The translations under genes and the position numbers were made by a program. Shown in pieces: positions 2,630 to 57,300 of a DNA stretch of 64,000 nt. A model generated the notes under the pieces. It saw only the letters and a program-made list of their open reading frames with translations. It did not search any database and was not told the origin of the DNA. Source of the stretch: Octopus bimaculoides (Eukaryota); contig NC_068983.1 of assembly GCF_001194135.2 (NCBI RefSeq), positions 11,206,290-11,270,289 on the forward strand, in the 5' to 3' direction. Every line of letters begins with the position of its first letter. Positions within the stretch are counted from its first letter, which is position 1.

Positions 2630-4545
2630 GTAAGATGGTTTTGCTAAACTCTTATTTCGTTTGTAGTTCTTTAAACATTTAACAAAAATAATTTCATTGT
2701 TGATCTTAGATACAATAGTTTTGCTTTATGTTACTACTGTTTGATTTTTCTGTAAATAACCATCATCATCATCATCATTTAACATCTGATTTTCATGCTG
2801 GCATGGGTTGGACAGTTTGACTGAAAACAGGTAAGCCGGGGTTGTTGCACCAGGTTCCGATCTGATTTGGCAAGGTCTACAGCTGGATGCCCTTCCTAAC
2901 GTTAACCACTCCGAATGTGTTGAGTGTTTTTGAAATGCTACCAGCACAGGTGCCATTGACCGGACACAGGCATTGGTCACAACTATGGGCTCTAGACCTT
3001 GCTTCCACACCTGAAACTTCTTCTCTAGTTCTTGTAGTGATTCAGCTATAAGAACAAGGTTATCAGCATAGAGGAGCTCCCAAGGGCAGCCCATCTTGAA
3101 TTCCTGTTATTGCCTGGAGGACTATGATGAACAAGAGGGGGCTGAGGACTGATCCTTAGTGAACCCCTACTTGTACCCTGAATCCTTCACTATACTCGTT
3201 GCCAACTCTCACTTTACTGACAGCATCCCTGTACATGGCTTGTACAGCTCTCACCAACCACTTGTCTATCCCTAGTTTCCACATTGACCACCAGATAAGG
3301 GATCGGGGAACCAGGTCAAAGGCTTTTTCTATGTCAACAAAAGCCAAATACAGAGGTTTATCTTTGGCTAGGTATTTCTCCTGCAGCTGTCTTACCAGAA
3401 ATATAGCATCAGTGGCGCTTCTCCCTGGCACAAAGCCAAACTGTGTCTCATCTAAACTAACTCTCTCTCTAACTAGTTGGGCTATGACCCTCTCCTTGAC
3501 TTTCATCACCTGATCCCACAATTTGATACCAGAGAGGTTTTTTTCCTATGCTTTTAGTATATTTTATTGTGAATTGTAACTATGTGAATTCAGAGGGTAC
3601 TAGTCCTTTGGTTAAAACATAGTTTGTTCTTGTCACCTGACCTATAATATGTTATCCCCTGTACCAAAGATACTCCCTCCCAAGTTTACTTGATTGCAAA
3701 TACATGCCATAGAGAGGTTCAGTTTATTGTTGTAACCTATGAAGGATATTGTATTAAGTACCCAAGGGATTTGGAAGAATGGCTGGTCTTTAATGGCATT
3801 GGTTTTGATGTGTGCAGGAGAGTGAACTACATTGATACAAACTTATAATGTAAATGAATGATGGATGAAAAGAGTGTTATATGCTGCCCTGTTGAAGTAT
3901 CTGTTGTTGAGCTTTTAAACTGAGGAAGACATGGGAAAGTAATGATAGATCTTGGGGTGTTGGGTCTTGTAGATGATATATGCAGGAATGAGACAAAAGT
4001 ATGGTGTACTGCAGACTCACCCAATTCGTAATAGTTAGAAGAATGGGATGTTGCAATGTTCATTGTGGTGGTGGCATCAGCAGTTTCCAGCATTTGGTTA
4101 ATACAGACTTTCTGTTTTATTTACAGTCATTATTACAAGGTGGAACAAGTCTGCGAGATGGATTTGATGTAAGTAACACTATTTTTTCGTTCATATTCTT
4201 AATTCCATTTCTTTGACTTCTCTCCAGGAATTATTGTCATGTATTCCTAACAGTTTCTATTTATTGTAGATTAAAGGGTAAAAAGTTTTTTTACTGACTT
4301 CACTATTCATTGTGTATTAATATTTCAACCAGATCTGAAATAAAAAAACAAAAAGAACTAAAACAAAGATGATGTGTTGTAAAAGACATAACTATATGAT
4401 CTTTAGTTAATACTATATCATTCCAACGGTTTTGCTTGTTTTTACTTCCCTATATGTGTGTATGTGTGTATGTTGGTAAGAAACTATTGACATCATGGAT
4501 TTAATTATTGGGATTCTAAAATTAGATTTAATTATGTAGCTACCA

Positions 4546-31200: not shown

Positions 31201-34200
31201 GTATTGATTAAGTTATTCACATCACAGAATTCCAGAATTTGTGATCCCTCCTCATGTCTCTCACCGTACTTGCTTCCATCTTGTACTCAAGAGAAGCCAT
31301 CATGGTGTTGCCCAATATGTTCTTTGAAATTACTAACTGTGCTAATGAAGTTGCCATCATTTCTTATCAAGATAATCTGCAGTATTGCAGGCCCTGCCAA
31401 AAAAATGCTATGGGCATACCCATCTTTCTTTACTGCACTACTCTTCCCCCACTAAAAGTACATATCTAGCAAACAAATTATATACACGAGAAAATCATTA
31501 GAGTGAGATCATTGCCAGTGCCGCTGGACTGGCTCCCGTGCAGGTGGCACATAAAAAACACCATTTTGAGTGTGGCCGTTGCCAGTACCGCCTGACTGGC
31601 CCTCGTGCCGGTGGCATGTAAAAGCACCCACTATACTCTCGGAGTGGTTGGCGTTAGGAAGGGCATCCAGCTGTAGANNNNNNNNNNACCCACTATACTC
31701 TCGGAGTGGTTGGCGTTAGGAAGGGCATCCAGCTGTAGAAACTCTGCCAGATCAGATTGGAGTCTGGTGCAGCCTTCTGGCTTGCCAGTCCTCAGTAAAA
31801 TCGTCCAACCCATGCTAGCATGGAAAGCGGACATTAAACGATGATGGTGATGATGATGACTATGTACTGCTCTTTTTATAATTGGTATTGGTTTTCTTTC
31901 TTTCTTCTTTCAACTTTTCTCTAATTTTATCAAAAGATTTTATTACATTTATTTGTTTATTTTTGACAGGAATTTCAGCACTAAAACTAGACTCTTCTAC
32001 TGAATCAGACATTGCCAAAGTGATTCGAACAGGGAGCAGTGAATCTTCTCAGTCATCAAAGCCAGTTCCAACTAGTCTCCCATTAGAAGCACGGTTTGAA
32101 GTGGCAATGTTCAGTGTGGAGATGCAAGGAGATTTGGAACCTGATTCACAAAAACGACTTGTTGACCTTTGCTTACAAGATCTCATCCTTATCTATCATC
32201 GAATGGACAATTATGTTTCCTCATTTGATCTTTCTCTTAAATCACTTACCATGGAAGATTTATTAGAGACAAATGACTCTAAACCTCGTTATTTAATGGT
32301 CTCATCTAAAAAGGAAGAACCAGAACCTAAAGAAGATAAATTAGGTTCTAATTTATCAACATCTTGTCCTGATTGTACAATAATGGTCCCTAAACCGAAA
32401 ATGCCTGGTTCTTTGCCTTCAAGTTTTCACGAAGAGAATGTTTTTATGTCTCATTCTAAGAAAAACAGCTTAGGAGGTAATCAGAGGAAAATGGCTGCAG
32501 AAGAAAACAAGTAAGTATTGTTTACCGTAGCTGTATCTTTGGTTTGTCACCATTTATATTCATTTCTTTCAGGAGATTACTAAACAAATCATATTGATAT
32601 ATTGATTGATATATAGAGACACAAGTGTGGCTGTGTGGTTCAATCCTACTCCATGGCACCTTGACCAGGTGTCTTCTATTATAACCCTGGGTTGACCAAA
32701 ACTTTGTGAGTGGATTTGGTAGATGGAAACTGAAAGAAGCCCATTGTGTTTGTGTATATATATGTTTGTGTTACTGTGTCCTTGCCTTGACATCATCATC
32801 ATTTAACGTCTGCTTTCCATGCTAGCATGGATTGGACGATTTGACTTGGGACTGGTGAACCAGATGGTTACACCAGATGGTTACACCAGACTCCAATCTG
32901 ATCTGGCAGAGTTTCTACAGCTGGATGCCCTTCCTAACGCCAACCACTCCGAGAGTGTAGTGGGTGCTTTTTACGTGCCACCAGCACGAGGGCCAGTCAG
33001 GCGGTACTGGCAACGGCCACACTCAAATGGTGTCTTTTTATGTGCCACCCGTACAGGAGTCAGTCCAATGTTTTGTTCACATGCCACCGGCACGAGTGCC
33101 AGTAAGGTGGAGCTGGAAACGATCATGCTTAAATGGTGCTTTTTATGTGCCACTGACACGGAAGCAAGACCGCTGCTCTGGCAGTGATCTCACTCGGTGC
33201 CAGTCATCGAATTTGGTTCAGTTTTCGATCACATGATGGTTGTAAATGAACATCACTGTCATACAAGTAGTGTCGTTCATTTGCAATATTCAGAAAAATG
33301 TCTAGCCAAAGAGAGCTACTGCCTTGCTTGGAAATAGATTGGGGTTGGTGAAAGAAATGGCATCTGGCCATAAGAAAAAATCCTCTTCAATAAACTCTTT
33401 CCAACCCTTGCAAGCATGGAAAAGTGGATGTTAACATGATAATAATGATGCTGAGTCATTTACTTCATGGTCTAAAGTTCTAACTTTCCACCTATATGAT
33501 GATATTTAACTGTTGCTAAAGTAACCACATCTAGAAACACTTCTGCATCAGGCCCATAAATGTGTTGTACCCTCTCTCTGTCTTTTCTACTACAGCGACC
33601 CCTTCTCTTCAGAGGTGGCCACTCTCATGCTGTCTCCACTCAGGTACTCTGAGTTCATGTGTCTCTTCTCTTTCTATCAGTCTTGTTGTGTTTACTTTGT
33701 CAAAGGTTCCTCACTAAACACTGTATCCATTCCTTTCATCATCATCATCATCGTTTAACGTCCGCTTTCCATGCTAGCATGGGTTGGACGATTTGACTGA
33801 GGACTGGTGAAACCGGATGGCTACACCAGGCTCCAATCTGATTTGGCAGAGTTTCTACAGCTGGATGCCCTTCCTAACGCCAACCACTCAGAGAGTGTAG
33901 TGGGTGCTTTTACGTGTCACCCGCACGAAGGCCAGTCAGGTGCTACTGGCAACGGCCACACTCAAAATGGTGTATTTTATGTGCCACCCGCACAAGAGCC
34001 AGTCCAGGGGCACTGGCAACGATCTCACTCAAAAATCCTACGAAGGCCAGTTAGGCGGTACTGGCTTTCTTCCCACTATATCCATTCCTTTGTCCCTTAG
34101 AAATTTCCTCCCTGTAGATATCTCTCCTGAAATTGCCTGCTTACTACAGTCTAAGTGAAACATTTAACAATATAAATCTCATTGTTTGGAAGAGCCTGCA

Positions 34201-39386: not shown

Positions 39387-42300
39387 CATCATCATCGTTT
39401 AACGTCTGCTTTCCATGCTAGCATGGGTTGGATGATTTGACTAAGGACTGGCAATCCACAAGACCACTTATTATTCGTTTACTCCATTGTTTTGCATTTC
39501 CCAGACATGTATGCACATGTTGCTAAGTCTTTCATTGACATTCTAACTCTTAGCCTCGATTTATTATTTTAAACTAGATACTATAGTGGTTAACTTGCTA
39601 TTGTAATTAAAATAATTACTACTGTTATATTATACTTGCTATGATAAATAAAACCAAAACAGTTATTATTAATATGATGACTGGCACCCGTGCCAGTGGA
39701 GCGCTAACAGCACCATCCGAGCAGGATCACTGCCAGAGCAGCGGTCTCGCTCCCGTACCGGTGGCACATAAAAAGTACCATTTGAGCGCGATTGTTTCCA
39801 GCTTCGCCTTACTGGCACTTGTGCCAGTGGCATGTGAACAAAACATTGAACTGACTCCTGTGCAGGTGGCACATAAAAAAAAACACCATTTGAGCATAGC
39901 CGTTGCTAGTACCGCTGGACTGGCCCTTGTGCCGGTGGCACGTAAAAAGCCCCCACTACACTCCCGGAGTGGTTGGCGTTAGGAAGGGCATCCAGCTGTA
40001 GAAACTCTGCCAGATCAGATTGGAGCCTGGTGTAGCCATCTGGTTCGCTAGTCCTCAGTCAAATCATCCAACCCATGCGGACATTAAATGATGATGATGA
40101 TGATGATTTTATAATTAAAATAAATTTGCTTTTGAAAGTTATTACATAGCACGGATTTACATGTAAGTAAAAAACAAACAAAATCAAGTATACATGAAGA
40201 TGTTTGCATGTAAGAATTATTGACTTTTGTGCATATTTTTCTCTAATCCTATTTTTTCCTTTGTCTCTTTTTATCAGATCTCAGCAAGTATGATACGTAA
40301 TGCTCGCATTAAGATGAACATCGAAGCAGACAGTCCTGTGATTTTGCTTCCTTACAGTTATAAAACAACAGGCCTACTCGTTGCTGAACTTGGACGGCTT
40401 AGTGTTACCAACCAATTCCTTTTAGATGGTTCCATTGGAACTATCAAAGGTAGACAGTACAATTCAGCCAACGCTACTCACTCTGACGCCAAATTATCCT
40501 CCAATTCTGAGAGTAATTACACATCAATGACTCAAAGTGTTTTCCATCAGAGTTTGCCAAAAGAAAATGAAAAACCTGCACTAGTTATTCCTAAAATTGA
40601 TGTTGATCTGATGAACCAAAGCATTTATGGTAGTCTTGAGCACGACATCAGAGATGGGGAACTTGAAGCGTCATCCATGACTGAATCAAAATCTTCTGAT
40701 ATTTTTGATCCCACTGAGAATGTTTCTACAGAAGAGAGTGTTGTCCTATCAACATTGGAGTGCTTGTCTCCATGCAACTTTTCAGTACTGGACAGCCGCG
40801 TGTTGTCTGATAGCAGCTCTGACAAACTCTCCTCTCCACAGAGTAGTAAATTCTGTAAGAAACTGTCAGCACCATTGCTTGCCCAGGAAAAAAAGACTAT
40901 CAACCCTTTCACGTTGTCTGTTCAGCAGAGCATGGCTTATGTCCATTGTGACCCCATGAAACACATCTGTCTGCTAGATGTAATGTCAGTAACATTGACC
41001 GATATGGATTTGTATTCAGCTGAGTTGGTTAAAGTCGATACATCTGATGGACCGATTTATTCAATTGAAAGAGATGTAAGTTAGTTTTTACATATTGCAT
41101 TTTGCCATACAGTTATCTAAACTTTTTTACTTCAGTTGTCTACTTTAATGAGAGAAAATTAATATCAAATTATTAAACTATGTTACAGCCTAATAATGTT
41201 GGTTATAACTTGTAAAAAAACAAAAAACAGCATTCATTTTTGATATCTAATTTTCCCATGTCAGAAATAAATACTGGCCAGGCTCCACTCCTATTTCATA
41301 ATGATATCAGCTCCAAAAACTGTTATTCATGTTATTCATTGATGACAACTTCAGTATTTTTCTGGACAAAATATTTTCTGTATTTTAACTTCTTATGGTA
41401 TAAAAAATATTTTAAAATTATTTTCATCCTGAGAAAGTTAATTGTTAAAAAACTGACAGTTTCAAAATTTGATTTAATCCTTTTAACATCGTATTTTTAT
41501 TAATATACACTATCTTTGTCTCAATTAATTTTGAAAATAATTCAGTAAAATAACTTAGTCACTATTAAGCTGATGTTTGGTATATAAATTAATTTTGGTG
41601 GAAGGTTTTAATTTATATCACTTAAAAACAAGAGGCTTGTTTCATAGAACCTGAAGCAGTCTCGGTAGGTTGGTATCAAGAGGGTTAATTCAAAGATGCC
41701 TGAACCGGGTTTGTCACCTATAAGGAGAGCTAATATTGTAAATATTTCACCACCGTATTCCATTCAGTTTGATCTTCAATTGTTATTATGTGTTTTATTC
41801 CCAGATACATATCTAGACTCATTACTTTAGTACTATTTCTAATCTGTCTGGAATAAAATATTGAAAAATACTCTAAATATTGTGAATGTATTCTCTAAAT
41901 ACAAGGTTAATAATCTGTAAAATATTTTAGTGGAAAAATTATGTAAAATTATTTTACTGAAAAATTTAATCTTACTGTGCAATGTATATTTGAATTATTA
42001 GGAGATAAAAATCAGCATAATAATATTTGGGACAGTGGTATGATGTGGAGTTTTAAGATATATTTTACTGGGTTTTATCATACTTACCTGAAAATTTATA
42101 TCAAGCCATTTAAAGTCTGATTAAATAATAACTTAACTTTCTAGAAGTATTAGCTACAGCATCCTCAAGAAGGTTACTATCACATTATGTAGAGATTATA
42201 TTCTAAAATTGTACGTTCGTTTCTGAAATTTGTGTGACAACTTAATATTCAATATCACTCATTTGAAATTCTTTATTTGCAGACTGGTAAAATCTTCAAA

Positions 42301-45300
42301 GAAAAATGTGCATTACATCTGCAAGTGGAACGGAATCTTGATCGGGGACTTAGCCATTCTGCTCCAAACATTCATATGACTGGCAAGCTGTCTTCCATTC
42401 ATGCTTTAATTACTCTGAAGCAGTTCAAACTATTGCGGGGTATCCTTGCTCATAATATTGGTGAAACATTGCCAGACTTCCAGCGACCCGTAATGACACA
42501 TTTGAAAGAGCCACAAAATAAGGTATGTCTATTTTCATCATCACCCGTAACTTTATCATTATTATTATTATTATCATTATTATTATTAGTATTATTATTA
42601 TTCAGTAGTCTTATTTTTATCATGTGCTTTCACTGCACTACTGAGCACAGCTCTGTGTGCTGTGGTTTGTTGTGGTGCTCCTATTTTCACTGCATTGAAA
42701 GTGTTTTACATAGGACGTGTGCAGTGCCTAGTGGTGCTATTTTCTCTATGTTATATATACTTGTAAGTCCTGGTGTTTTTGTTATGTACTAGGAATTGTT
42801 TCTGTTTTTAGGCTCCACATTCGAGTTACCTCTATTTGTAGATCTTTGTATTTTGAAAGTTTTTCCATTTCTTTCAGAGAAATGTTGTCACCTGTTGGTA
42901 TTGATACATTGATTAGAAAGCATTTTTTTCTTGGTGATCTCTGACAACCATATCCAGCCTTATTGGCCTTAATTTCTCTGTGTGCATATCTCAAAGTATG
43001 ATTGCTTTCTCATTTTCTGTAACCTTTTCTCAAGTGTGCCTATACCATCTTTTTTCTGTTGTTCCATAGTGTTAGCATAGCTTCCAATGTCTATAGGTCC
43101 CAAGCATGTCATGTCTGTGAATATATTCCTTCTTCACCAGGACTGGGCAGCCAGAAGCAATAAGATTTATTGTTTCTTCTCCATCTCCACATATTCTGCA
43201 GTTACTTGTATTTCTTGTCATTATATGTTTTTGGTGATTTCTGGTGGGAAGGCTTTGATCTTGTGCCGCAATTAAAAATCCATCAGTTTCTGGTTTGAGT
43301 CCTGAGCTTCCCGGCCATTGTTAGGATTCTGCTTTGTCTATTTCTTTTCTATTTAGCTTAACCCAATATTTGCCATGAAGGAGCTTTTCTTGCCATCATT
43401 TTATCATGATACGTTTCTTTTCCAGTTTTAGTTTGGATTTCAGTTGTTTTACAGCTTTTGTTGTTTCTTCTTTTTCTTCATAGTTGTTTGGTACTATGGC
43501 TTCCTTTTTTGTATTTGTCAGCTTCCTTAAAGACAGACAACAGTTTTTCTGTTTCGTTCATGTTTGTGGCTATTTGTATTAGTTTTCCTTGCTTCTGAAA
43601 TAGGTATTTCTGTAGTTCTATGGTGGTTATTTTGTAATAGCTTTCTAGCTGTATAAGGCCTCTATCACCTTTGATATGTTGTATATATAACCTTTATATA
43701 CAACCTTTATTATTATTATTATTATTATTATTTACTAGGCTCCCCCATCTGGTTCAGTGTGGACAAATATGCTCATGGAAATTGACTTAAGAAACATCAC
43801 TGTAGAACTATTATTTGACTGGCAAAACACATCCCAAGATTCTTTGGCAAGATTTGATTTCATTCATTCTAATCTTCTGGTGAAAACACGCTCCAATGGA
43901 ACCAAAGATGTTGATTTGGTTTCTCATGAAATACGAGCAGTTGACACTAGATATAAAGGTACTGTTTTTTTTTTTTTCTTTCCTTTCACACTTTTCCATT
44001 TCTTTAATTTCACATGCATTTTTGTACCAAGTATATTACCAAATATATAAGTTAAAAAAGAAATTTTTTTATTATTTTAATAAATTATTTTAATCGTTCA
44101 TTTCAAAATACAGATCTTCCACCTGGGAAAGCCCCAAATGTGTTTAGTAACATCTTGCAACCATCAAAGCAAGTAGATACCTGTAGCAAGTTGCAAATGG
44201 AGCTATATTTTCAATTCACCAATCAAGTGAAACTGTTTACTGTCTTGTTGAATAACATGCGGCTGATGTGCATCTTTGACTGGTTGCTAGCCGTCAATAA
44301 CTTTCTCACCACTGATATTGAGGACCCATTTTTAGGTAAGTATTAGACTTTGATCAAAAGGCAATGTTTAGTTTACTGTACAATATGCATCTGTGTGGAG
44401 GCGCAGTGGCCCAGTGGTTAGGGCAGCGGACTCGCGGTCATAGGATCGCAGTTTCAATTCCTAGACCGGGCGTTGTGAGTGTTTATTGAGTGAAAACACC
44501 TAAAGTTCCATGAGGCTCCGGCAGGGGATGGTGGCAAACCCTGTTGTACTCTTTCACCACAACTTTCTCTCACTCTTACTTTCTGTTTCTGTTGTGCCTG
44601 TAATTCAAAGGGTCACACTGTGTCACGCTGAATATCCCCGAGAACTACGTTAAGGGTACACGTGTCTGTGGAGTGCTCAGCCACTTGCACGTTAATTTCA
44701 CGAGCAGGCTGTTCCAGATCAACTGGAACCCTCGACGTCGTAAGTGACGGAGTGCCAACAAGAATCATCTGTGTGAATTTTGTAAGGGATTTAGTAAAAA
44801 TTCCATTCCACCCTCCAAATCCAGTGCACTGTGCCGAGATATAAATTTCTGTGTTTTTGGCTTCTAAAGCATTTTAATTTTTATAACAGTGTTGCTGGTT
44901 CTTACCCATTTCATTTCTTGGAAAATATAATTTTTTTTCTCTCCAAGCATAGTTGAAATTAACATTGGACTGTTGCTGCTATTTGTGACTAAATTCTACC
45001 ACGTTATACCTAGGTGGATTCAGCCAGCTTGACAACAAACAAGACACAACATAAGACAGGACTAGGGCCAGAATATGAACTGCTAACCTCTTGCTTAATT
45101 GTGCTACTTGGTCCATGTTTTCAGAAACTGTATTATTTGTGTAGCTCTTGCTCAACCTTGCCGAAGCAGATCTAGGACACATAAATAGTAGCAACCCATG
45201 AAACCAAAACTTTACTGAAGACTGCCCCACACAAACTAATATGCAGTGGTCTATCACGTAGGGTACAGTGAGGTAGTTTTGGCATTCTGTGTTTCTTCCA

Positions 45301-48300
45301 GACTACTTGTATGTCTAGAAGTTTTAGTGGTGGTCGAATGCAGACATGAACAAGAGGAACTTGGGCACAGCATGACAGCTATTATTCTTCTGTATGTTTT
45401 TCTGATAATTAGCTACCCTTGTATCTGGCAGCTTGTAAGGTAATTGATATTGCAAATATCTTTGTGTGTATGTGTGTATGTATATATATATATATATATA
45501 TGTATAGATATATATATATGTGTGTATATATATATATATAACAAATGAAAGACAGAAGATGGAATATACAAGAATTTATTATTAATCATGATAATTGCTT
45601 CGACACATCTAGCATCGATTCCTCATGTGGGACACTCAACATCATGGCAAGCTGGCAAAATCATTAGCATGTTGGACAAAATATTTAGCTGCATTTCTTC
45701 CAGTTCTTTACATTCTGAGTTCAAATCCCACTGAGGTCAACTTTGCCTTTCATCCTTTCTGGGTCAATAACATAAGATACAAGTCAAGTACTTGGTTCCA
45801 CGTCATCAAAAGTTCTGGCCTTGAACTCTGCAATGGAACTGGCTTCCCATTTAGAGGGAATGTTGTGGTTTTGGTCTCTTATATGCCACGGAATTCAGGT
45901 AACCAGCCTTATGAGTCGTAGGGCTCAAGGAAAAGTAAATTATTGTTTTAGCTTGTTTTAGACTTTCTATTAAAATCTGGCCCCACCTCTTCTCTTCATT
46001 TCCTGTTGCTTTTTCTCCACTCACAAACACCAATATCAGTCTCTTTGTCCCTCATTTGTTTACTTTCTATAACTATTTCATCATACTGACCCTATAATGA
46101 TTGGACAGGTCAGTGTTATCAGAATGATTTTGTAGTTGCATTCTCGTACTTTGTTGATGTCCCTAGGTGTGATTTAATATGTAGCAGGAATTGTTTAGGC
46201 TAAAAGTTGCTGTAGAAATAGTTTATAATTCACATTGAAATATCACTCGGATATCTGAATATTAAATTGATGGGTTTTTTTGGGTTTTTTTAATCAGATA
46301 TGGATAAAAAGCCAGAGGAAAAATTTGAAACTGTGAAGGTCAGAAACCCCTCTGAAAGTTCCACACCTGTATTGAGGCCCCGCAGTCCTCTCAACAGATC
46401 TCAAGGAATAGTGACCAGACGATGTCATGTCGTTGAACAAGTAAGTATGCCTCTGTGTGTGTGTATTTTTTATTGTTTTAACTTCCCCTTTCGCATGGTT
46501 GGATAGAGTCTGTTACCAACTTTCACTTGTTTCCAAGCAAGGTAATATTTCCCCTTGACCAGACATATCTTCACAGAATACTGAAAATGAATCACACTGC
46601 TTGTGTGACACTCATTTACAACTATCACACAATGTTAAGACAAGGAGAGAGAGAGAGAGAGAGAGACACACACACATACACACACACAACGTAGATATAT
46701 ATATATATATATATATAATCATCATCATCATCATCATCATCGTTTAACGTCCGCTTTCCATGCTAGCATGGGTTGGACGATTTGACTGAGGACTGGTGGA
46801 GCCCGAAGGCTACACCAGGCTCCAATCTGATTTGGCAGATATATATATATATATGCATAATGAAATAACAGCCAACATTTGGCAGTTAGAAATATAGGGA
46901 GGGATAGAAAAAAGAGAAGAAAGAATTGCACAGAAAGAGGGGACAGGTGGAAAGAAGAAACCTTGAACTCTACAAAAAGAAGGGGTAATTATAGGGTCAG
47001 TATGATGAAATAGTTATAGAAAGTAAACAAATGAGGGACAAAGAGACTGATATTGGTGTTTGTGAGTGGAGAAAAAGCAACAGGAAATGAAGAGAAGAGG
47101 TGGGGCCAGATTTTAATAGAAAGTCGGAAAATGTAAGAAGTACATATAGTGGGAGGAAGAAAAGAAATAATGATGTGAGTGAGAATCATGAAGGGAAGTG
47201 AGTGGAGGTAGGAAGTGAGTGGAGGTAAGAAGTGAGTGGAGGTAAGAAAGATGACAAAATTGAACTCTAGAAGAAAATGGAGCAAGGCTTGAAGCAGAAA
47301 TAAAACCCATCAAAAAGCTAGTATGTATTTAGTATTAATTATTGTAATATGTAGGATGCTTATTATTATTATTATTAATGTATGATTGTAATTTGGAGTA
47401 AATGAGTTTATATAATACGTCTTAATTTTGTTGGATTAATGAGCCTGTATAGCAGTTCTTTTTTTCTTTTAACACTGACACTCTCTGTCTGTCTCTCTCC
47501 CTCTCTCTCTCTCCTCCCTCTTTTTTATGTAATTACACCTTCTATATCTGTTGATTTTGACTCAACTCATAGTATGTCTGTTTATGTTGATTTAACCAGC
47601 TCTGCTTAAACATTCAGTATCACTAACTTGCCCTTCTCCTGTTCACTGTACCCGTTGATTCACTTTTCCAGACTGAGGTACCATTTGAGCTAAAAGTCAA
47701 TGTCAGAAATACGCAGTTTGTAGTTGTTGCTGACATGTCTACATGGGACACGGAAGCAGCTATTCTGAAGGTAAATATCAATATTAATATTAGATGTTAC
47801 TTTCAAGACAAAAGTTTTAATTTATTAACAGGGAAAGGTCTGTGCTTTTAATATGTCTGTGTGATACAATATAAATCTGATTTTTATAATTTGATATCCT
47901 ATTGTGAAGTCGTTTATATTGGATGTGCCATCTTAGTTCCTCAGTAATGATATGTTTATGATCAATTAAATTCAAACTTATAGTGACCGTTCTTAAGTGA
48001 CCCTAGGAAAGGCACATTACTCTGCTTATTTCAATATACCTGGTGGTCATGTTTCCAATGGTCAGAAATTTGCAGAGCATCAAACTGAAGATAGGAACTC
48101 TAGTATGTAAATGTCCAAACATTCTTGCCTATGTTCACAGTGTGTACATGTGCTATATTTTGGTAATTATGTCATTAAATCCTTAACTTGATTTCACCCA
48201 AATATCTATTTTAGGATTATTAACCATGTAAATTATTCATATAAATTAGGTGGTGAGCTGGTAGAACTGTTAGTGTCGGACAAAATAAGTAGCAACATTT

Positions 48301-54300: not shown

Positions 54301-57300
54301 TTTTAAGGGGTGGTGTTAGTCAATTATATTGACCCCAGTAAATGATTGATACTTTATTTTATCAATCTCAAAAGAATGAAAGGTAAGGTTGACTATGGCA
54401 GTATTTGAACTTGGAACATAAACAACTGGAAGAAATGCTACTAAGCACTTTGTCCAGCACATCGATTATTCTGCCTACTTGCTGCCTTCATACACACAAA
54501 TTCGAAGACCCGGCAAGCCAAGTGAGACCATAATCCAAGGCCTCTGCCAGGGGTGTAGCCAGCCCACTTATGCATACCTTTTCTTCATTGGACACTCACT
54601 GTCTGAGCATGACCGTTGCCAGAGCAGCAGCCTGGCTTCCGTGCCAGTGGCATGTAAATAGCACCATTTGAAGTGATCGCTACCAGCGTTGCCTTACTGG
54701 CACTTGTGCCGGTGGCACGTGAAAAAACATTCGAGCGAGGTCGTTGCCAGTGCTGCTGGACTGGCTCCTGTGTAGGTGGCACGTGAAAAGACACCATTTT
54801 GAGCGTGGCAGTTGCCAGTACTGCTTGACTGGCCCTCGTACCGGTGACACATTATGCTATCGGAGTGGTTGGCGTTAGGAAGGGCATCCAGCTGTAGAAA
54901 CTCTGCCAGATCAGATTGGAGCCTGGTGCAGCCATCTGGTTCGCCAGTNNNNNNNNNNTTGGAGCCTGGTGCAGCCATCTGGTTCGCCAGTCCTCAGTTA
55001 AATCGTCCAACCCATGCTAGCATGGAAGGCAGACATTAAACGATGATGATATATATATATATATCAGGCACGTGCTATCAGTAATTACTCAGGCTAGGCA
55101 GTTGGTGACACTTATGTAGTAAAACATACTAAAAATAAGCGAAACACAGCCGCATGACAGAGTTGAAGGTAGATTTACATCTGCCTTTACAGCACATAAA
55201 GAAAACGTTGTTGTAGGAATGTATGCAGCACATGTGCTGCAGCAGTACTATGCTTAGCTTAGATACTGAGATTGAAAGGCTTGGGCGAATTATGCCTACC
55301 TAATCTAGAACAAAAAAAATATTTTGCATTTTATGCATAGTAATCAAAGTAACCTTCAAGATTTTACTGAATTAGGTGCATATTTTACCATAAAAGGAAA
55401 ATGTTGCTATCGATCTATTTTATTCAAGGTAGGTACTGCCTACTTTGCTTAATTAGGCGGCATGTCCCTGATATATATATTGAAAGAGAGAGAGAGAGAG
55501 AATGTGTATGTAGGTGTATGTTAAGGGCACACATTACAGAATTATCACCCACATACATGCTGACTGAATGAGTAAATAGTTTAGGTGATCAAACATCTAG
55601 AATATCCATTGTCAAGACCTATATATATATATTCACACACACACACACACACCTTCTTTCCCAGTGATTGAATTTCAATGGAATGCATTTGGTTGCATTG
55701 CAGAAACACCAGCAAGGATTCATCAACAAAGTTATCTCAAACAGTCGCCAAGAAATTTGGTCTACAAAAACGTATTCCATTTGTGCCTTTTGTCATACGA
55801 AATCACACAGGACTGCCATTCCATTTTTTGACTGTAACCACCACCCCTGCCTGGTAAGTTGACTGTATACCAATACCTATATGTACATAAATGTCTTTCG
55901 CTTGAATTCAAACCTGTTGCAATAGAAAACTTTATTCCACATGCCACATTTGTTCATATAATTGTACTTGATATATATTCGACCATGTTTATTTAGAGCC
56001 GTAAATAAATGTAATTTATGTTTTACAATCAAATTAATCAAACAGTACGTTTGCATTTGTTGAAGGAATGTCTTTATGAATTCTTTTTTGCAAAAAAGGG
56101 TTTAACTGTTTTTGTTCTCATTCACGATAGGATTAAGATCAGATACAGTAAAATCATGCATAAAATGAAATATATTCATTGAAGTTGCTTGTGCATATTA
56201 CAGACAACATAAGGCAGCCATTACCTGGTTGTTCATGTAGAAGAAAAGAGAAAGAAATCAAGCACATAACTGTGTTCTTAGAATGCTACCTGTGTTTAGA
56301 GTTCAATGTTGTATGTGTCCACTTTTTCCCATAAAAAGTTTTGTTGTTACTTTTGAGAACTTCAGCAAAAGTAATGCTATTACCTTTAACATTACCAATA
56401 ATTGTTGCTGAACTTTCCTCAACTCACATTCTGTATTAGCAAGAATAATCTTGTATCATCATTTAACATTCATTTTTCATGCTGGCATAGGCTGGACAGC
56501 TTGATAAGCCAGAGAGCTGCTCCAGGCTCCGATTGTCTGTTTTGAAAAAGGTTTCTACAGCTGGATGCCCTTCCTAATGCCAACTGCATGCTTTTACCAT
56601 GACACCAGCATGAATACTTTTTATGTATGTTTGTAATTAAATATCAGAAAATCACACATTTATGCTAAAAATGCTTTACTGAAGTCAAGGGCAGCACCAA
56701 TTTTCCATTTTTATTTTGTATTTTATGAAGGTAAAAGGCTATTTCCCTGTAGAATTACTGGTTCTACTGTGGATGCAAGCAGGTTATAAATTCAGAATCC
56801 TGAAGCAGAAATTTGGATTGATTAATTCTCAATGGGCTCATAATTTCTGCAACACATTCTACTCGTATTTGTGAGATGATGCTGTGATTGCACAGACAAA
56901 CATCCTCAACCAAATCCAAAAGAACATCATATGAATGATTGACAAAGATTCAGCTGTCAACATGCTTCAACCACTCACTTGTATACATGCTGTTTTTTCT
57001 CATTGTCTCTTCTATTACTGCTACAATGATTTATCCTTTTCTGAAGTACCTAATAATATACCCTCTCCACCAAGGCCTGTCTTTTCTCATCCTGCCACCT
57101 GTTCTTTATCTCTTGTTCTATGGTCCACAGTAAAAACTTTATTTAATTTTCCTTCCGAGAACTACATCTATAATTTCATACCTGCCCATGTTTTTCCATC
57201 TGATAATTATTTGAATAAGAAGGTTTGCAAAAATCAAGGATCTGCCCGTCTTTCCTTGACATTTTATGAAGAAAAAAAAAAAATACAAAATTAAACATTT

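Follow-up and report, generated by a model that had tools for sequence, protein, structure and literature searches.

A perfect inverted repeat around an exon of VPS13D

In a stretch of 64,000 nucleotides from Octopus bimaculoides (contig NC_068983.1, positions 11,206,290 to 11,270,289; hereafter the window, in whose own numbering all positions are given), a perfect inverted repeat of 138 bp brackets a coding exon of the gene VPS13D. The two arms of the repeat are exact reverse complements of each other (138 of 138 bases). The right arm is native to the sequence in which it lies, and the left arm is a copy of it in inverted orientation. On balance we favour the view that the repeat is genuine and is a young local inverted duplication templated about 1 kb away, probably through a selectively neutral accident of copying during replication or repair. 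The features concerned are:

44114-44335, + strand: upstream coding exon, whose last codons read ...DIEDPFL, with one further base (phase 1)
45961-46098, no strand assigned: left arm, exact reverse complement of 46988-47125, taken to be the copy; in the intron upstream of the bracketed exon, ending 199 nt before its acceptor
46099-46987, + strand: spacer between the arms, 889 nt, made up of 199 nt of intron, the bracketed exon and 547 nt of intron with microsatellites and a copy of a short interspersed nuclear element (SINE)
46298-46440, + strand: bracketed coding exon of VPS13D (w33 in the original prediction), 143 nt, encoding (D)MDKKPEEKFETVKVRNPSESSTPVLRPRSPLNRSQGIVTRRCHVVEQ
46880-47300 (approximate, roughly 430 nt), + strand: purine-rich tract holding the right arm, with a sliding purine content of 0.62-0.86
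46988-47125, no strand assigned: right arm, taken to be the source; in the intron downstream of the bracketed exon, starting 547 nt after its donor
47672-47770, + strand: downstream coding exon, which begins in phase 0, encodes TEVPFELK...AAILK and matches positions 503-545 of the Pfam VPS13_M profile

The limits of the repeat are well defined. A repeat finder called arms of 143 nt at 99% identity (45956-46098 and 46988-47130, with 889 nt between them), and since two mismatches fall within the outer five bases of this call the true arm unit is 138 nt, which gives a whole unit of 1165 bp from arm to arm. The edges of the arms are sharp on all four sides, as 60-nt outer and inner flanks align with each other at chance level only. 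Additionally, a BLASTN search of the arm against the whole window returned the two arms only, with a next-best match of 16 nt, and the left arm is flanked by sequence found nowhere else in the window. All other repeat pairs of at least 60 nt in the window have identities of 96.5% or less. Among exact inverted runs with partners no more than 3 kb apart, the 138-nt one is by far the longest, and the runner-up is 73 nt; this second run and most of the other long exact inverted runs fall in repeats of the SINE or transposable element (TE) type. A perfect match of 138 nt in 64 kb is far beyond chance and cannot arise in that way. These results bear out the original prediction, made from the sequence of the window, that the inverted repeat is perfect and locally unique among repeats that have all diverged.

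The heptamer GGTCAGT is found in direct orientation at 46107-46113, 9 nt past the end of the left arm, and at 46995-47001, 7 nt inside the right arm. The first of these and the ACTGACC of the left arm (46083-46089) could form a 7-bp hairpin at the inner junction. This pair of heptamers is compatible with chance.

The uniqueness of the arm bears on a possible origin from mobile DNA, in which the arms would be two young copies of a mobile element (a miniature inverted-repeat transposable element, or MITE, a SINE, or a fragment of either) inserted in opposite orientations, or in which the 1165-bp unit would itself be a foldback or terminal inverted repeat (TIR) transposon. The unit resembles MITEs and foldback transposons in having two identical inverted termini about 1.2 kb apart, and young SINEs abound in the genome, some of them in pairs at 96.5% identity. 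However, neither a further copy nor a diverged relative of the arm is present in 64 kb that are crowded with other repeat families. Target-site duplications are absent, as a search of the ends of each arm, and of those of the 1165-bp unit as a whole, gave no direct repeat of 2-12 nt, and the arm carries neither a terminal inverted repeat nor an A-rich or microsatellite tail. Furthermore, the composition of the right arm runs on into its flanks, so this arm is not an insertion, and the unit encloses a frame-essential host exon that is conserved in Octopus vulgaris. A transposon origin is disfavoured by these observations, and we consider it extremely unlikely.

Base composition indicates the direction of copying

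The two arms differ strongly in how they fit their surroundings. The right arm is 71% purine and lies between 150-nt flanks of 73% and 79% purine, whereas the left arm is 29% purine between flanks of 49% and 50%. Only 0.6% of 138-nt windows reach 70% purine, and about 0.6-0.7% of them have a skew as strong as that of the arms. Because the right arm continues the composition of its flanks and the left arm is a pyrimidine island, the right arm is the native source and the left arm is an inverted copy set into unrelated sequence. This is the polarity that had been proposed, with a right arm seated seamlessly in a purine-rich tract and a left arm interrupting sequence of another kind. In the same purine-rich tract, just past the right arm, a 17-nt GAAGTGAGTGGAGGTAAGAA-like unit occurs in three tandem copies (47195-47248).

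The bracketed exon is required for the VPS13D reading frame

The exon between the arms has the attributes of a real coding exon. Its acceptor consists of a pyrimidine tract followed by AG, its donor is GTAAGT, and its frame is open and encodes MDKKPEEK...RRCHVVEQ. Its splice phases agree with those of both neighbours, to which it supplies 2 + 141 nt, and the joined translation of the three exons is open. When the exon is skipped and position 44335 is joined to 47672, the product reads ...DPFLD and terminates there, a single codon being read before the stop. Residues 2429-2476 of O. vulgaris VPS13D are the counterpart of the exon, with three amino-acid differences, and the upstream exon matches residues 2355-2428 of the O. 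vulgaris protein (P0005) at 100% identity in a high-scoring pair (HSP) from tblastn. The original prediction is thus upheld for the 143-nt size of the exon, for its being a real exon of VPS13D and for the loss of frame on skipping.

The identity of the host gene is based on a cephalopod relative. The O. vulgaris protein CAI9719401.1 has 4320 aa and is named VPS13D by UniRef, and an open reading frame (ORF) fragment from Logan that was recovered by homology search (P0003) shares a 90% cluster with it. When CAI9719401.1 was compared with the window by tblastn, 42 collinear HSPs on the + strand were obtained, covering residues 198-3079, and Pfam VPS13_M matches are also collinear across the window. 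The gene range of VPS13D in O. vulgaris is 191 kb. No UBA domain was found when a selected part of the window's ORFs was scanned with Pfam. From these sequence matches we take the host gene to be VPS13D, the name being the annotation of the source record. Naming of the paralogue from solved structures was rejected, as it gave weak matches to VPS13C and VPS13A, and the question was settled through the O. vulgaris cluster member instead. The 90% cluster that holds the full-length O. vulgaris VPS13D has an octopod ORF fragment of 287 aa as its representative, and for this reason the full-length protein was missed by the homology search.

With respect to the protein, the exon encodes a Ser/Pro/Arg-rich linker of 48 residues in octopus. 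The corresponding segment of a distant animal homologue (P0001) has about 19 residues and shares the MDKK start, so the linker is of variable length among animals.

A template switch as the proposed origin

The arrangement described above could have been produced by a single copying event. In the mechanism that we consider most likely, a 138-bp piece of the downstream intron (46988-47125) would have been copied as its reverse complement into the upstream intron at 45960/46099, when, in the course of replication or of the repair of a break, a nascent strand transiently switched to the opposite strand and then returned. The event would belong to the type named 1-4-3-2, with switch points 1 at 45960, 2 at 47125, 3 at 46988 and 4 at 46099. 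Synthesis would leave its template at 45960, copy the opposite strand from 47125 to 46988 and resume at 46099, which leaves the orientation of the spacer unchanged. An equivalent alternative, inseparable here from a template switch, would be fill-in from a template while a break is repaired. A young templated insertion of this kind predicts an ancestral left site that is empty, with ...TTGTTTTA joined directly to GATTGG... (a few bases being perhaps replaced), and an ancestral purine tract in which the right arm is already present.

Events of the 1-4-3-2 type generate novel inverted repeats and account for 31% of high-confidence human-chimp events, and need no pre-existing repeat; identities of only 2-3 nt are reported for the switch points of larger rearrangements (Loytynoja & Goldman 2017, PMC5453318). 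The octopus repeat shares several features with this class (PMC5453318; Loytynoja 2022, PMC9435742): it is a novel and perfect inverted repeat with little or no identity at the switch points, the insert reverse-complements a nearby stretch of its own chromosome, with the source 889 nt away, and the copy lies upstream of an intact source while the exon in the spacer keeps the orientation and frame of the gene. In this regard, identity between the junctions and the continuation of the template amounts to 3 nt or less, offset by two mismatches, which fits the switch-point identities of 2-3 nt in the first of these studies (PMC5453318). The difference lies mainly in scale, as typical events of the class involve tens of bp taken from tens to a few hundred bp away, whereas here 138 bp would have been copied over about 1 kb. 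The events inferred from human haplotype assemblies reach 318 bp, and one filter of that screen dropped distances above 250 bp (PMC9435742).

The distance between copy and source, about 0.9-1.2 kb, is beyond the ranges of the cited screens. Such a distance falls within the size of an Okazaki fragment or a replication fork. The processes known as FoSTeS (fork stalling with template switching) and MMBIR (break-induced replication mediated by microhomology) produce templated insertions that are larger-scale relatives of template-switch mutations, and the octopus event would be placed between short-range template switching and insertions of this FoSTeS/MMBIR type.

An inversion with duplicated breakpoints was rejected as a candidate, as it would have flipped the conserved and frame-essential exon. 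Further searches of the sequence were negative within their scope. Rfam gave only sub-threshold matches on microsatellites for a structured RNA gene in the arms or spacer, a 25-mer of the arm and a codon-degenerate pattern of the exon had no match in metagenome scans, a composite of all stop-free segments around both arms had no match in a protein search, and 10 window ORFs around the arms together with one large exon ORF had no exact look-up match.

Age of the copy

The absence of any difference over 138 bp sets the pairwise divergence of the arms below about 2.2% at 95% (Poisson bound). Among the SINE pairs of the window, the youngest reach 96.5% identity. Two genomic contigs of a related octopod (L001 and L002, from Logan SRR11869384 and SRR11869391) provide a further comparison: they are 93.6% identical to the window, that is, 6.4% off it, over 1033 nt of exon and intron, and this alignment covers window positions 40124-41149 only, the first ~187 nt of each contig remaining unaligned. 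The octopod from which they come matches neither the species of the window nor the annotated O. vulgaris protein. Set against these values, the left copy would be younger than both the SINE pairs at 96.5% and the octopod divergence of 6.4%, unless gene conversion has homogenised the arms.

Points against a young template switch, and the assembly

Several points weigh against a young and genuine template switch. Clean microhomology is absent at either junction, and 138 bp copied from about 1 kb away is at or past the edge of the short-range events of the cited papers. Gene conversion between the arms could also yield perfect identity in an older repeat. Both arms, and the novelty of the left one, are read from one assembly sequence, in which the event is deduced from a single sequence and not from an observed ancestral state as in the published template switches. 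Furthermore, this sequence is a draft scaffold with five runs of N in the window, and each of its two 10-N gaps lies between perfect direct duplicates of contig ends, of 52 nt (31626-31677 and 31688-31739) and 33 nt (54916-54948 and 54959-54991). These duplicates represent overlapping ends of contigs that were left unmerged, a minor artefact of assembly; the three long gaps of the window (898, 553 and 791 N) have no flanking duplicates.

The inverted repeat could be a mistake of the same assembly, in which only the right arm would be genomic and the left arm would have been written in at gap closing or contig extension, for instance from chimeric or misoriented mate-pair reads. Perfect identity is what such an artefact would give, an arm of 138 nt would lie within the span of one short read, and the repeat shares with the gap-flanking duplications of draft assemblies its perfect identity and its two nearby copies, in a scaffold known to have them. 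However, the known gap artefacts are direct repeats of 33-52 nt that abut a 10-N gap, whereas the repeat around the exon is inverted, is 138 nt long, has its copies 889 nt apart and lies more than 7 kb from the nearest run of N. In addition, the junctions of the left arm share no more than 3 nt with the continuation of the template and its flanks are unique, so an assembler working with overlaps or k-mers would have had nothing to mis-join on, and reads would have to support each of two chimeric junctions independent of one another. We therefore regard an assembly error as unlikely, though with a probability that is far from negligible, and continue to favour a genuine duplication by template switching. 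In the original prediction, recent origin, gene conversion, selection and assembly error had been listed as causes of the perfect identity, a list that our analysis found reasonable.

A predicted RNA duplex and its possible functions

When the RNA from 45901-47185 was folded, the full 138-bp duplex was present in the minimum-free-energy structure and also in the centroid structure, and the duplex alone has a predicted energy of -251.5 kcal/mol. The proposal that the pre-mRNA could form a 138-bp duplex is thus supported by both predicted folds. Under a template-switch origin the duplex would arise as a by-product, with the 143-nt exon sitting in a loop of 889 nt. Intronic reverse-complementary matches, including inverted pairs of Alu or SINE copies, that promote exon skipping and back-splicing (for instance PMC8330042) offer a parallel, since here too the complements lie in both introns flanking an exon (199 nt upstream and 547 nt downstream) and the predicted duplex draws the splice sites together. 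In contrast to those pairs, the 138-bp repeat is perfect and does not derive from a repeat family, and its duplex is a prediction.

The first functional ideas put forward for the repeat are mechanistically plausible: by analogy with other matches of this kind in introns, the duplex would be an ADAR substrate and could raise skipping or back-splicing of the exon. Long perfect double-stranded RNA is the classic ADAR substrate, with hyper-editing known for inverted repeats of introns and UTRs, and cephalopods show heavy RNA editing. The predicted duplex is long, perfect and intramolecular, as such substrates are, and its arms contain 31 and 57 adenosines. Much of the editing noted in cephalopods is recoding within exons, whereas the 138-bp duplex contains no exon sequence.

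Similar structures are not rare in the window, which holds 34 inverted pairs of at least 50 nt with spacers below 6 kb. Inverted SINE/TE copies around the exon at 31960-32505 have predicted duplexes of -308 to -342 kcal/mol, stronger than the -251.5 kcal/mol of the perfect repeat, so the roles proposed for the duplex are not special to the exon at 46298-46440. VPS13D evidently tolerates such structures, and a neutral by-product is therefore the most economical account.

This comparison bears on the possibility that the inverted repeat is older and has been kept identical by gene conversion or by selection, with the duplex regulating exon inclusion, circular RNA formation or editing. The exon enclosed by the duplex is one that cannot be skipped without truncation of the protein, matches of the reverse-complementary kind can have a function and be conserved (PMC8330042), and the general abundance of RNA editing in cephalopods also points in this direction. 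However, compensatory and G-U changes are tolerated under selection for pairing, and an identity of 138/138 is not what such selection predicts; the left arm stands out sharply from its flanks in composition, as a fresh insertion should; and stronger predicted duplexes formed by ordinary SINEs bracket other exons of VPS13D. Long-term maintenance of the repeat appears quite improbable in view of these points. The boldest possibility, which we hold to be very doubtful indeed, is that a large, long-range template switch at zero divergence has in one step made a perfect 138-bp clamp of double-stranded RNA around a frame-critical exon, a clamp that already serves as a switch in this octopus lineage, through heavy ADAR editing, a circular RNA formed from the one exon, or control of dosage by way of skipping and nonsense-mediated decay (NMD), or that is polymorphic and affects VPS13D output.

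The original prediction as a whole held for the structure of the repeat, its polarity, the frame of the exon and the predicted duplex; for its functional part, plausibility is the fitting grade.

Other features of the window

Some further observations concern the repeats of the window and the introns of the gene. The SINE copy within the spacer is at 46725-46839 (region 46717-46860), with runs of (TA)n and (ATC)n before it and one of (TA)n after it, and it is 96.5% identical to a copy at 33736-33850, which puts the two among the youngest pairs of the window. The exon at 31960-32505 (region 31498-34033) is bracketed by inverted SINE/TE copies such as 31525-31677 and 32914-33067, which are 93.5% identical, and the 73-nt exact inverted run (31697-31769 and 32884-32956) also lies around this exon. 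The left arm of the perfect repeat supplies a pyrimidine tract and CAG (46010-46039), and CAG/GTCAGT follows at 46106-46114; read from the sequence, these would delimit a hypothetical 69-nt pseudo-exon (46040-46108) with an in-frame stop. Retrotransposon remnants are present in the introns, antisense to the gene: a reverse-transcriptase fragment matching RVT_1 (3159-3545, - strand, E = 4e-10) and a weak zf-RVT match (43075-43320, - strand).

Implications

Both the type of mutation and the intronic RNA structure described here are of kinds already known. The effect on VPS13D is probably small whether the repeat is genuine or not, because other exons of the gene are already flanked by inverted SINE pairs that are stronger. 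An artefactual left arm would point to a class of inverted local mis-fills in a draft assembly that is in wide use. If the arm is real, it would widen the known range of size and distance of template-switch mutations, and it would be a clean natural case of a single error of replication or repair that makes, out of non-repetitive DNA, a long and perfect RNA hairpin enclosing an exon. Such events would then provide raw material for circular RNAs, hairpin-derived small RNAs and editing substrates, in a lineage with a prominent double-stranded RNA biology.

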